A model generated the notes under the pieces. It was not told where the DNA came from and made no database searches. It worked only from the letters and a program-made list of their open reading frames with translations. Made by a program: the position numbers and the translations under genes. DNA of 64,000 nucleotides from Adineta vaga (taxonomy: Eukaryota; Animalia; Rotifera): positions 8,494,001-8,558,000 of the forward strand of contig CP075494.1 of assembly GCA_021613535.1 (NCBI GenBank), given 5' to 3'. Below are positions 1,534 to 59,300 of the stretch, piece after piece. Positions within the stretch are counted from its first letter, which is position 1. Every line of letters starts with the position of its first letter.

Positions 1534-1809
1534 TATTTTTCACTTTTCGTTAGTAATCACACTTGCTAGTAAGTCTGTATGAAAAAAAACATGCTTTGAT
1601 TTACTTTCAAATTAAATATGATAATGTCTTCAATAAATCTAATATTATCACAAATGATGATTCATAGTATTTACCATTTATGACTTTATTTCGACTAATA
1701 TGTTGTCAGAACGCGATTTTTTTTTCTTCCTACTGTGTAATAACATGTTGTTTTACATGTCATCATGCATTTGTGTTGAAACAGTGAAGAACGTTAGACG
1801 TCCCAAAAG

Positions 1810-3033
1810 ATGACGTCTGTTGCTTCACTTGAGAAACATTATGCTGAAATAGCTGCAAAAACAGCTGCAGCAATAGCAGCTGAAGGACCACCGCACAATA
1901 TTTTGAGCGAACCAATAATTCAAAATTCGCTTCCTCAACTACCACGCTATATACCACCGCCACCAATCGATCGCTTTGGCATGTTCGCGAACCGAATGGC
2001 AACGATGCACATGTTTTTTCCCACATCAGGTCGTTTAGGTTTCGACACAGTAAAATCATCAACCGAACTTCCACCTATTGAAATACTTCGTGAAATGATT
2101 CTCTATGAAACACGTCTAAGATTATCTGATTCAATTCAAAATCTTATGGATGAATATCATACAAATGAAGCAGATGCCGTGTATGTTTGGTTTTGATTTC
2201 ATATGAACGCTCACTAATTTAATTTGCATAAATTTTTAGTTTGATAGTTAATCTTCTTCAAAAACATGTAGTGGAATATTTTGGCTATACCGATGTTAAT
2301 ATTCTACGTTCAGCTCAATCTCGTTTTCCTGATGATTCTGTTGTTCAAGAAACGTTTTACAGTAAAATTCGTCCGATAGATTTATTATAATATTTCATAA
2401 GATATTTTTATCCTTCTAGTCAAACATAATAAAGTCACTCAAGGTTTAATTAATCAAGGTGAATGTGCTCGTGATGTCAATTTATATACATTGGATGGTC
2501 AACTTACTAATCTTTTCTCGCGAATTAATGCTGATCAACCATTAATAATTGTAGCTGGTTCAATAACATGACCTCCATTTTGTGCGCATGTCGAGCGAAT
2601 GAAGTAAGTCGATTATTTGAAATTGATTGATTAAATCTTGATATTTTCCATAACTAGCGCGCTTGTTCGCTCACATGTACCAAATGGAATTCAATGTTTA
2701 GCAATTTATATTGCAGAAGCACATGCTAGAGATCAATGGCCAGCTGGAAAGATCATTTCATGTGTCAATCAACCAACTACACTGGAACAACGACTTCAAC
2801 ATGCCCGAGAATTTATAAAAAAATACAATTTTCAAGTACCTATGCTTGTTGATACAATGGAAAATACATTTCATCATACTTATGGATCATGGCCATTTCG
2901 TTTCTATATTATTTATCAAGGTAAATTAATATTAAAAGTTGAACCAAATAAAACAACATTTACCTATGATATAAATGAGATTGATCGATGGACAAATGAT
3001 TTCTATCAAACACGTTGTACACAAACAGTTTAA
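1810..3033 (+). CDS. Deiodinase-like selenoprotein (thioredoxin fold), 350 aa, Sec215 encoded by in-frame TGA 2569-2571
   Basis: Exons 1810-2180, 2240-2361, 2420-2603 and 2658-3033, all joined by GT..AG introns, total 1053 nt in frame. The translation contains QPLIIVAGSIT-U-PPFC, IYIAEAHARDQWP, MLVDTMEN and YGSWPFRFYII. These match the deiodinase motifs RPLVxxFGSxTUPPF, IYIxEAHxxDGW, VDxMxN and YxAxPxRLYI. A SECIS lies downstream. Confidence 0.9.
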
Positions 3034-3089
3034 TTGATTTCTATTTTCGATTGATTTTTGTTTTTCGATAGTTCTCAACAAAACAAAAG

Positions 3090-3168
3090 TTTAACATGAA
3101 CCCATGATGAACGTAGATGAAAATCACACAATGTGAATGTCTATGTTCGGATAAATATACATGTTAAA
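3090..3168 (+). promoter_or_regulatory. Eukaryotic SECIS element (type II) in the 3' UTR
   Basis: Helix I TTTAACATG (3090-3098) pairs with CATGTTAAA (3160-3168). Core A-UGAU (3104-3108) lies opposite GGAU (3149-3152). Helix II GAACGTAGAT (3109-3118) pairs fully with GTCTATGTTC (3139-3148), allowing G-U. Unpaired AAAA at 3120-3123, and an apical mini-helix TCACA/TGTGA (3124-3136). AATAAA at 3209-3214. Confidence 0.9.
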
Positions 3169-3322
3169 TAGTTTTTTCTAAGATATACTTTTGCGCGTAA
3201 AGTTATCGAATAAATATCGAGAGAAATAGAAGTACAAATAAATTATATGTACGTTTAATTGTACTACAAAATAAATTCATAATTAAAAAAACAATGAACA
3301 GAAAGGAAAAAGAGTATATTTT

Positions 3323-5151
3323 TTAAAGTCTTGTATCAAAATCGTAGTTATCATTGAGAACTGCATTCGATCCCAATGATTCCAAATAATTTCCTTGAAC
3401 ATGTAGATTTGCCAATGATGCTGAATCAATCCAAATTGTTATCGAACTACTTTCTTCTAATGATCTTAAATGATAATCTATTCTTAATGAAGTATGGAAT
3501 AAATTTCTTTGACGTACGACAGATAAGAGACGTAGTTTATCATGTAATTTGAATGTAATTGAACGAATATGCGGTAGTTGGTTTTGTAAAAGAATCAAAT
3601 CCGGTATTGTTGATGTTCTAATTACTAAACATTCGACATTAGGAACCAACTGAGTGACAAGTGGAATTTGTTCTAATCCGTAACTATGTTCACCGTCAGA
3701 CGTAATATCCAAAGATTTAATAAATTTTATACGATTTAAAAGTTCATGTTGATAATCATATAATTGATAACAACGAATTCGTAATGAATTGATATTTTGA
3801 ACATCTGATAAAAGTAAACTTAATATCTCGCATTTACTTCTTAAAGGTGAAATATCGAGATGTTTTACTCCTACAAGATTTACATGTGTTCGAAGCCAAT
3901 TAAGTACATTTGTATCAAGACGACAAATTGTAAGATTTTGAATATGATTAAACTGATAATAGATCGATATAGAATTGGTTTTATTCGAAATGGCAAAATT
4001 AGTAATATCATTGACAGGAATATCATCATTAAGATTACGAAAAGGCACTATCCACCATCGAATTACTGGATCATCGAATTCATCTTTAGTATCGTTTGAT
4101 AATCTGAATAAGTCATATTCTATATGTTGATGTTCAGTTATAATAAAATAAAAATTTTGCATATTTATCCAGAATGGAGTTTCAAACGATTGTAATAATG
4201 TTTCTAGTTCATCATCAGTAAAACGATATGTTGTTTGTAAACGAAAATGTGTCAATGACAATAGAGCTGTTTGAAATAAAGTTTCCCATGCTATTGCATC
4301 AATAAGTGCTTGATGTGTTTTAATTTCTAGACGATGTAGAGCAGGCATATTTTGCAGATATTCAGATAGCATGTTAAATGTTGTAGAATGATCACGTGGA
4401 AAAGATATAATTAATGTATGAAGAGCCGGCATTGATTGAATATTCCTGTTGGTAGAAACGATCGGATAGGTTGAATCAACATTTGAAGGTGGAGTAAATC
4501 GAATGTTAAGATATTTAAGAAGCGGATAACGATCAAAAATTGTTTGTAAATACGAAAAATCACTACAAATATTCAGATTCGTCAGACAAACCAGATTTGG
4601 TGCGATAGTTTGCTAAATTCCCATCGTGTATGTGGTAAATAACCAATGAAAACGAGCCGTCTCAATGTTGATAATTGAGGTACAATATCAAAGGTACTAT
4701 CAAACAATAATATTCCTTTACTATTTGATACTTTAATGATAAGAGTTTTAATTGGTGTAATAGCAAGTGTAAGTAAAGCTTGTTCAATACGATTCCACTG
4801 AACACTCACAGCATCGACATGAATATAAAGTTTACGAAGTTTTGTGAATCGGTGTAACGATGGGAAAGTCGTTAGAAAAGCTAAAACTTGTCCAAATGTG
4901 TCATAATCTGATATAGCTAATTCTTCGATTCGTTGGACATAGTAGGGCAAAATACGCATACAAAGTTGAAAATGATCGTTTCGACAATTAATAAAATTGA
5001 AATTATGTCGTTGGCATTCATCAAGAATTGAATCAATACGTCCATTTTGTTGAAACGCAAAAGCACGAATAATATCGATACCGTTGATATATTTATCAAA
5101 AAGATCTGCTAAAATTTCATTTGGTAATGATTCTAACGTTGAAATCGACAT
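3323..5151 (-). pseudogene. F-box/LRR protein, intronless, interrupted by an apparent 1-nt frameshift near 4600-4612 (pseudogene or sequence error)
   Basis: N-terminal F-box-like STLESLPNEILADLFDKY followed by LxxLxL repeats. The 5' frame stops at 4582. The 3' frame is open from about 4612 (QTIAPNLVCLTNLNICSDFSYLQTIFDRYPLLKYLNIR...) straight into the 3323-4432 ORF. Confidence 0.7.
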
Positions 5152-56333: not shown

Positions 56334-59300
56334 ACCAAAGAAAACAAAGACTAATAGTCTGAATTAGCAAGAAAGCGTTTAGACGAATGTCGACATACGC
56401 AGGTATGATTAGACTATCGAAAAAAAAGTAGTTTAATGTCTCGTTGTTGCTGTTGCTGCTGCTGCTGTTGTTCTCGTCGTTTCTTTTGATGTTTATTTTA
56501 TCTTTAAATAACAAGCGAGAGAGTGAGAGAGTAAAAAAGGAAATAGTTAGTCTAGAGGAACTGATTAAATTGATCCGACATGAAAGTTAAAAAGAAAATA
56601 GAAAGGTATAAGTGAAGATTCTCTTGACAAAACTACAAACAAATGAACCGCAATAAGTAAAAGTTACGTTTGATTTGTTTTTGGTCTCTATCGTCTAACG
56701 ATTAGTAACGCTTGTGAAAACCATTGCACATTTTAAGAAGTTGCGAACAATGCAATAGCTTTCGCTTCAATCGCACTCAGCTCTACATGTAAATGCTAGG
56801 AACGCGCATCGTACGCTTTGTCACTAATGAAATTCTTTCTGCTTCTACACTGTATTCTTTCTCTTGCTTCTTTTTTTTTGTCTGAATATAGACTGCGTTC
56901 TTCTTTTCTTTCTTTCTTTCTTTCTTTCTCTCGTTCCTTCTATCATCCTGCTGTTCTCATAAACAGTGACACTAACTGTAAAGCAAGTGCGCTACCAATA
57001 TCTCGCGCATCCTTACACTACATGTTTACTTCTATCTCTTTGATCGATCTCATCTCATCATTCACTGATGATGAGAAGTGTAAATCGCGTATAAGATGCT
57101 TGATTCATCTCGTAATAGAACTGAAGTAATGATGATTATGCGATAGAAAATGAAGAGAATGCTTTCCTTTCAAGATGTACGTATCTAAAGACAATTAGAG
57201 TTAGTCATTATCATCGACATTTGTGTTACTATTCTATTCCAAGTATTGGATTATTTTACATGTGCGTTATTATATGTGACGTTACACAGGTAATCATGAT
57301 TACTTGAGACATAAAAAAGATAACGAGAGAAAGAGAAAGAGAGAAAACGGATATTTACATTATTTTCATGGTTTTTGACACAAGAATATGTCGTTAGTAA
57401 TGCTGATGTAAATTTTATACTGGAATGACGTTTACTGGAAGCAGAGTTGATAATATTATTCATCAAAAATATAACAGTGAAGAAAAAGAACAGAAGTCGA
57501 TTCAATACAATATAATACAATCAATTTATTGTTCATAATAGTATCAATCGTATCAATTGATACTCGCTGTGTCTATTGATTTCTTTCATTTTTTGCCGAA
57601 AAGAATTTTGAGCATTCAAAACAAAACCGAATACATCAAAAAATATCAACAGTTGTCGTCAATATAAAACTAAAATAGCACGTATAGGCCATCGAAGAAA
57701 ATGGCCAGATGGGTATTTATATAAAGCAATGAACATTAAGTGACATAAGCTATTATCCATGTATGACCTTACTAATCTTCTCTCTGTTTACTCATTGTCT
57801 CGGTCGAAGAACTTATGCTCTCATTTTTTACTGGATAATATAACTTCTTTACATTAGCACAACAGACAATTTCCAAGTCAGTTAGTAGTATAGACAAGAA
57901 GATCGAATCTGCATCTCGTTATTAATTAGGAAATATAGAAAAAAAAGAGAAAGAAAGACATCAATAGTCGAATACTCGATCGATAAAATAAGTAATCGTT
58001 GCTTTCTTTCTCCTTTTTTTCTCTCTCTCTTTCTTCTTTTCAATTTTCTGTTTTATTGTCTGTGCCTAATCATCAATACTCAGCATGATGAACGAGCAAT
58101 CAATTCGGCTATCAAAAATCTAGTCCAAATATAAGCTAATACAAATACATACATTCTTTTTTCTCAATATTTTCATCATTGATGAACGCTAGTAAGATTC
58201 TTTCAGAAAAACCAATCTTCTTCAGTCGATAAACATTGGCATTCATTTGACTAATGTGATGGGAAACTAACTATCAAGTAACAGAACAAGAAAGATAAGA
58301 AAGGAGAGAAGAAAAAGAAGAAGAAAAAAGGGAAAAGCACAAACAGAAGAAAACACCAGCAAGATAGATGTAGTCACGTTTTGTTGATTTATCTCTCTAT
58401 ATCTCGAAAGAATGACTCCTTGAGACAATTCTACTGATGGGAAATAGTTTCATTGAACATTCTTTTCTAACGAGTTCAGAAAAGTTTTGATTTTTAATGA
58501 GTGAAATTTGTTTTGAACGACGACAAAATATATAATGCCGATGTCGTCTTTCTTTTCCGGTAATACCTTAACGAACTCTCGAGCATAAAAGTATCGAGGA
58601 ACTGATTAACATAGATACACACATACATACTGTGAAGGTGTCACAGATGGATCGAATCGAAGAAATATGAGTAAAGCAAATTGATGCATTTTTTCGTTAT
58701 ATTTACTTATTCCATGACGATCGTCATCTGTTATTATTTTAATGTGAACGTGAAACACCCTCCGGCTTAATACTTCAAATAAAATAGAAGAAAAAGAAAG
58801 AAAACAGAAGGAAAACTTGACATTTCACTATTTCTTCTTGAGATATTTTATCTAGTGTCAATGAGACGATGATAACGCCAACGCTAAACTATTTGCCGCA
58901 GGGGTTCGAACAAGAATGACAACTGTTCAGTAAAACAAAGGTCTTCTTTCTTCAGCAAGATAATTAATCATTGTTGTCGTTAACAGTCACACGAATAACA
59001 GAGAAAGAAACAGAGACATCAACGAATCAATAAATCGTTGTATTTGCTTGTATGTATATTACTGTTAGCATGAAGGAAGAGAGAAAGAAGCATGTGAGCA
59101 GCACAAATGTCAATCGCAAAATATTATCAACTGAGCATGGAACTATCATACATATGTAGAGAGATACACATGTGTCATCTATCGATCTAGATCAATCTCT
59201 GTTTGATGAAGAGCAAAAAAAATCGAAGGACATCGAGAGCAAAAAGATTTGAATAAACAAATCAGGAGTAATCCGTTCCATACATATGATCTCGTCTAAC

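Follow-up and report, generated by a model that had tools for sequence, protein, structure and literature searches.

A deiodinase-family gene of the bdelloid rotifer Adineta vaga with a predicted selenocysteine at its active site

Identification of a predicted selenoprotein gene

Analysis of a 64,000-nucleotide stretch of the genome of the bdelloid rotifer Adineta vaga (assembly GCA_021613535.1, contig CP075494.1, C5:8494001-8558000; hereafter the window) identified a four-exon gene whose product is, with a probability of roughly 90%, an enzyme of the iodothyronine deiodinase family, 350 residues long and apparently soluble, with a predicted catalytic selenocysteine, Sec-215. This residue would be specified by an in-frame TGA. 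The reading of this TGA as Sec215 of a deiodinase-like protein had been proposed in a first-pass annotation of the sequence, and transcripts, a selenocysteine insertion (SECIS) element, paralogues, the occurrence of Sec and Cys in the same alignment column and the genes of the Sec pathway were all found to agree with it. The first-pass annotation did not contain a SECIS element; the hairpin described below was identified in the present analysis.

Gene structure and transcripts

The gene is situated on the forward strand at positions 1810-3033 of the window, with its four exons (Table 1) joining to form one frame of 350 codons in which the TGA is the sole internal stop. Each of the introns (2181-2239, 2362-2419 and 2604-2657) was found to possess GT at its start and AG at its end. 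The stop-free pieces of the exons translate to 123 aa (1810-2178), 40 aa (2241-2360), 49 aa (2422-2568), 10 aa (2572-2601) and 124 aa (2659-3030); adding the three codons split at the joints (GT/T, A/TC and AA/C) and the TGA itself gives 350 codons before the TAA, with the TGA thus being codon 215. The segment AGSIT-TGA-PPF at 2554-2580 corresponds to the family motif G-S-x-T-U/C-P-P-F, while the deiodinase domain, of thioredoxin fold, has its C-terminal half encoded by exon 4. Coding sequence continues in frame past the TGA, and the strings QPLIIVAGSIT*PPFC, IYIAEAHARDQW and YGSWPFRFYI were all found to be present.

Four public sequencing runs were compared with positions 1600-3400, three of these being RNA-like and from three studies (X1, X5 and X6) and one DNA-like (X10). 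Contigs of the RNA-like runs were found to possess the joints 2180/2240, 2361/2420 and 2603/2658 exactly as predicted, all of them GT..AG. A single X6 contig spans exon 1 to exon 4 across all three joints, and a single X5 contig links exon 2 to exon 4 by way of exon 3 and its TGA. Introns were retained in contigs 2135-2527 and 2498-2691 of X10. The TGA was retained in contigs of X1, X5 and X6, and the reads support TGA at this codon rather than TGT or TGC, with no other letter at 2569-2571 in the four runs, for which the neighbouring variants 2565 A>G and 2580 T>C are listed. With these splice sites and transcript joints, the exon structure, the reading frame and the retention of the TGA exon put forward in the first-pass annotation were all borne out, as was its observation that the open reading frame (ORF) track cuts the gene into two pieces (1810-2196 and 2638-3033), both of which are listed as ORFs.

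A contig of X1 covers 2884-3258, indicating that the 3' UTR, including the SECIS hairpin, is transcribed. The signal AATAAA is located at 3237-3242, approximately 16 nt before the end of this contig at 3258, and we infer a poly(A) site just after it. A convergent ORF of 369 aa (3323-4432, reverse strand) ends approximately 65 nt away from where the transcript contig of the selenoprotein gene stops. Furthermore, an X5 contig extends from 2884 past 3398, so the 3' ends of the gene and the convergent ORF may overlap.

Table 1. Features of the predicted selenoprotein gene, in positions of the window
Feature	Position	Strand	Evidence and remarks
Exon 1	1810-2180	+	ATG start; 123 codons and 2 bases; N-terminal extension
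Exon 2	2240-2361	+	Joints 2180/2240 and 2361/2420, GT..AG, in X1 and X6
Exon 3	2420-2603	+	Active-site motif AGSIT-U-PPF; both flanking joints in X5 and X6 contigs
Active-site TGA, predicted Sec, codon 215	2569-2571	+	No alternative letter in four runs
Exon 4, coding part	2658-3033	+	124 codons and TAA (3031-3033); YIAEAHARDQW; PF00837 match
3' UTR	3034-3258	+	As far as X1 contig 2884-3258 extends
SECIS, form 2	3089-3169	+	Rfam SECIS_1 below threshold; fold; covariation; covered by transcript contigs to 3258
SECIS helix I	3089-3098 / 3160-3169	+	Fold
SECIS AUGA	3104-3107	+	Fold
SECIS GA, opposite AUGA	3150-3151	+	Fold
SECIS helix II, 11 bp	3108-3118 / 3139-3149	+	Fold
SECIS unpaired AAAA	3120-3123	+	Fold
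SECIS mini-stem, 5 bp	3124-3128 / 3132-3136	+	Fold

Similarity to iodothyronine deiodinases

Homology and profile searches were run on the separate exon pieces. Exon 4 alone matched the Pfam family T4_deiodinase (PF00837, gathering score 27 bits) at 52.8 bits (E 4.5e-14) over profile positions 136-233, and a six-frame scan of the genome gave a match of 62.3 bits to positions 72-233 that takes in exons 3 and 4 together with the TGA. Matches of exon 4 to structures of deiodinase catalytic domains were also obtained, namely to mouse Dio3 (4TR3, E 3.5e-7) and to Dio2 (9H48, E 8.5e-4). No Pfam match was obtained for exons 1, 2 and 3a searched alone, and approximately 165 N-terminal residues are without a Pfam match, although they contain a motif (E-x-x-L-R-L-S) that recurs in distant homologues. 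No membrane segment was identified, with the maximum Kyte-Doolittle value over 19 residues being 0.61 in exon 1 and not exceeding 0.98 in any exon.

When aligned with full-length relatives, the pieces on either side of the TGA abut one single column. This column is occupied by Cys in homologue P0120 and by W in two metagenomic homologues (P0005 and P0103). Selenoproteins are classically recognized by such a Sec/Cys pair at a redox active site. The W of the two metagenomic homologues is probably a TGA that was called under a code in which TGA specifies Trp; some Sec proteins may be hidden as W in metagenome catalogues.

The segment IYIAEAHARDQW of exon 4 aligned to IYIEEAHPSDGW of 4TR3, sharing the motif YIxEAHxxDxW, which was found to be conserved in all nine paralogues of the genome. 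The proton relay and loop D of deiodinases have been described to involve Tyr157, Glu160, His162 and the loop-D Trp167 of Dio2 (PMC11592359). Among the relay and loop-D residues, Ser, Thr, Tyr, Glu, the first His and Trp are present here. The exception is the third relay histidine (His182 of Dio2, His219 of Dio3), in whose place the protein possesses Pro (NQPTT as against PQHRS). This Pro is shared by the window copy and seven other loci, with His present only in L009. A Lys is aligned with Dio3 Arg275, as in Dio2. Counting from the 4TR3 alignment, no Cys was found to be aligned with the residue that we take to be Cys239 of Dio3, presumably its resolving cysteine.

A family of nine genes in the genome

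The genome scanned comprises 100.8 Mb on six contigs, with 30% G+C and introns of approximately 55 nt. Nine PF00837 loci were identified, all nine possessing a stop at the active-site codon within the motif GSxT-stop-PP(F/L). In eight of the loci, the window copy among them, the letters TGA were read directly at this codon, and for L008 the genome scan counted one TGA inside its match. Four of the paralogues (L002-L005) have the same four-exon layout as the window gene, giving a five-member subfamily with a long N-terminal extension. Comparison of exon 1 with paralogues and with a gene of Rotaria (see below) gave identities of 44-68%, and comparison with L002-L005 gave 50-68% for exon 1, 55-62% for exon 2, 61-65% for exon 3 up to the TGA and 61-66% for exon 4. 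Constraint is therefore equal on both sides of the TGA, which is the conservation downstream of the stop that would be expected under the reading of the first-pass annotation.

Further observations were made on individual members of the family. L007 (C3:4161551-4162048, forward strand) and L006 (C3:4181773-4182267, reverse strand) are nearly identical, inverted and approximately 20 kb apart, and represent a recent inverted duplication. L009 (C5:4270444-4270890), the most canonical deiodinase-like paralogue (PF00837, 121.9 bits), was found to be without an intron after the TGA. In L002 (C3:17728386-17728742, reverse strand), the intron that follows the Sec exon is free of stops and stays in frame between PPFRANVERMK and SALVRSH, and ORF calling from beyond the TGA consequently gives a frame of 154 aa.

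SECIS elements

The SECIS hairpin of the window gene, which has the canonical form-2 architecture, begins 56 nt after the TAA stop codon. Folding gave a minimum free energy of -24.4 kcal/mol with a z-score of -4.75, and none of 200 shuffled sequences was as stable. In a search of 401 nt, the full Rfam SECIS_1 model matched 3095-3163 of the forward strand at 27.2 bits (E 0.0027), this being below its gathering score of 35. Rfam searches of the whole window at the gathering threshold returned no match, and with an E-value threshold the element was lost to the search filters both in the whole window and in 30 kb of the paralogue loci, the match appearing only when short stretches were searched. 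Due to this loss in larger searches, the Rfam evidence is weak by itself and it is the comparative evidence that carries the claim. With the strain variant C3112T, which is present in two of the runs, a C-G pair of the hairpin becomes U-G.

In the same window, several models for plant miRNA precursors and 3' UTRs were found to match weakly on both strands of one stretch of approximately 110 nt (57923-58034), which suggests a long palindromic hairpin at this position.

A hairpin with the arrangement ATGA...AAA...GA was found at all nine loci, starting 24-110 nt after the stop codon. A simple SECIS scanner detected the structure in seven of the nine UTRs, compared with a background rate in the window of 0.014 per 250 nt on each strand; L003 and L008 were missed because of bulges, with their hairpins being seen by eye and in the fold. 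Matches to Rfam SECIS_1 or SECIS_5, below threshold but on the coding strand and in the expected place, were obtained for five of the nine UTRs. When the SECIS elements of the five close paralogues were aligned, pairing was seen in 87% of cells, compared with 29-50% when the partners were slid, and eight of the 14 pairs showed changes on both sides of the same pair, compared with 0-2 when slid. The covariation score of this alignment was reached by no shuffle. A covariance model (R1) built from the five close paralogues recovered two of the four distant copies (L009 at 19.2 bits and L006 at 18.7 bits); as it holds too much primary sequence, this result was set aside as evidence.

These comparisons bear on whether the TGA is simply a true stop, in which case the locus would be a pseudogene or would yield an N-terminal product of 214 residues with exon 4 left untranslated. 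In this genome, TGA serves normally as a stop codon, terminating three of the 14 ordinary long ORFs of the window, which means that a TGA read as Sec is a case of recoding and not of a reassigned codon. However, conservation of exon 4 equals that of the protein before the TGA, half of the catalytic domain is encoded by this exon, all nine loci and the Rotaria gene have the TGA at this codon, every copy possesses a SECIS-like hairpin and a homologue has Cys at the TGA column. Termination at this codon is thus considered highly improbable.

Genes for selenocysteine synthesis and insertion

The first-pass annotation had held that its reading implies a working Sec machinery, and the genes for most of this machinery were identified. 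One tRNA-Sec was found (66.7 bits, cut-off 47) with the anticodon TCA, along with SepSecS at 300 bits and eEFSec, whose domain IV matched at 95.6 bits with none of 14 prokaryote controls matching. For PSTK, a weak match of 49 bits was found, the cut-off being 382. Two selD/SPS loci were identified (L019, C6:5391560-5392538, and L020/L021, C3:10490262-10491202), both with an in-frame TGA at the active site G-U-GCKVP, indicating that both are SPS2 genes and encode selenoproteins themselves. Judged by its gene content, this is a genome that uses selenocysteine and encodes tRNA-Sec along with enzymes for the synthesis and delivery of Sec-tRNA.

By the established eukaryotic mechanism, SBP2 would bind the kink-turn formed by the AUGA and GA of the SECIS element and recruit eEFSec together with Sec-tRNA(Sec), upon which the ribosome would insert Sec at UGA-215 instead of stopping. 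Read-through of the UGA by a near-cognate tRNA for Trp or Cys, instead of by Sec-tRNA, was considered as an alternative, as W is recorded at the TGA column in some metagenomic relatives. The catalytic residue of the family is, however, Sec or Cys, and with a SECIS element in every copy and Sec pathway genes that include UGA-bearing SPS2, Sec insertion is the economical reading, leaving read-through of this kind as remote a prospect as termination at the TGA.

Relatives and their annotation

Exon 4 was searched against 1.84 billion representative proteins, giving 1325 matches at E <= 0.001. Among the best 150 of these, most were 100-190 residues in length with the match starting within approximately 20 residues of the N-terminus; these short relatives are fragments of the C-terminal part, with gene calls beginning after the UGA. 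The top match (P0001), a "hypothetical protein" of 128 residues, has its start within the intron, as does the ORF of the window gene. The best full-length relative fetched was that of Rotaria socialis (CAF3303973.1; P0002, UniRef A0A820LL31), named "Iodothyronine deiodinase" and 60% identical over exon 4.

The deposited Rotaria model joins exon 2 directly to exon 4, skipping the Sec exon. Examination of its locus (L034; GCA_905331295.1, CAJNYD010000879.1) revealed the skipped exon to be intact and conserved (L034:2410-2559), with AGSGS-TGA-PPF at its active site (TGA at L034:2557-2559) and with a canonical SECIS element after the stop codon of the gene (L034:~3125-3185). The gene is thus like that of the window in exon layout, TGA and SECIS, and the lack of the Sec exon in its deposited protein is an annotation artefact and not a biological difference. 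These findings indicate that the TGA and the SECIS element are conserved in another bdelloid genus and that public annotation breaks such genes, which had been predicted for the window gene in the first-pass annotation and is seen in its relatives both as C-terminal fragments and as the Rotaria model without the Sec exon.

That the functional mRNA skips exon 3, so that the TGA never meets a ribosome, finds a precedent in the deposited Rotaria model, but it is the least probable of the alternatives, as contigs of the three RNA-like runs hold exon 3 and both of its joints, no 2361 to 2658 joint is listed among the run contigs (contigs can miss rare isoforms), the skipped exon of Rotaria is intact and conserved, and the skip would remove the entire active-site motif.

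It is well known that deiodinase-like selenoproteins occur outside of the vertebrates and that they are misannotated, genes of this ordinary kind being routinely broken by gene predictors. Passages of PMC12822975 and PMC2958745 recognize the misannotation of selenoprotein genes as a general problem. The recoded reading of the TGA corrects a gene that is split or mis-spliced by ORF-based and automated annotation. Its practical value lies in better annotation and in an entry point to deiodinase-like enzymes in animals without a thyroid; what is known of Sec decoding and of the deiodinase family is unchanged by it.

Comparison with known deiodinases and predicted function

The vertebrate deiodinases DIO1-3 (PF00837; 4TR3 for Dio3, 9H48 for Dio2) share with the window protein the thioredoxin-fold catalytic domain, the Sec predicted here within G-S-x-T-U-P-P-F and the motif YIxEAHxxDxW. 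Their Sec decoding is SECIS-dependent, and a SECIS element is likewise present in the window gene. Dissimilarities were also identified. Passages in PMC9141512 and PMC11592359 describe DIO1-3 as membrane-anchored homodimers with an N-terminal anchor, whereas the window protein has approximately 165 unrelated N-terminal residues in place of the N-terminal membrane segment. Furthermore, the histidine of Dio3 (His219) and Dio2 (His182) is replaced by Pro, and the chains of Dio3 and Dio2 match the catalytic half of the protein only at the E-values given above.

A Sec-containing deiodinase homologue has been described in Dictyostelium discoideum, an organism with no known thyroid hormone, along with a type II SECIS element possessing an unpaired AAA (Lobanov et al. 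2007, PMC2375036). The window gene resembles this homologue in belonging to the Sec deiodinase family and in having a SECIS element with an unpaired AAA. It differs in being part of a family of nine genes, all with the TGA, five of which have the four-exon layout and the long N-terminal extension. Searches of the literature for selenoproteins, deiodinases or the selenoproteome of rotifers or Adineta found nothing relevant, and no thyroid-hormone system described for rotifers was found in the literature.

By analogy with characterized deiodinases, the selenolate of Sec-215 would act as the nucleophile of the thioredoxin fold and attack an electrophile, which in deiodinases is the iodine of an iodinated phenol. 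The oxidized selenium intermediate would then be reduced back by thiols, and the Ser/Thr/Tyr/Glu/His proton relay, being mostly conserved here, may assist. The reaction could be the reductive dehalogenation of iodinated tyrosine-derived compounds, a proposal made tentatively on the basis of this analogy, with another thiol-dependent redox reaction being about equally likely.

The analysis documents a nine-member set of deiodinase-family selenoproteins in a bdelloid rotifer, an animal known for its survival of desiccation and radiation. As a more speculative proposal, which we consider rather unlikely to hold as it stands, this all-Sec set, and in particular the soluble five-member subfamily with its long N-terminal extension and without the third relay histidine, may consist of lineage-specific selenium-dependent reductases or dehalogenases unrelated to thyroid-hormone-like signalling. 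If this is the case, possible roles would include the detoxification of halogenated dietary compounds or redox defence.
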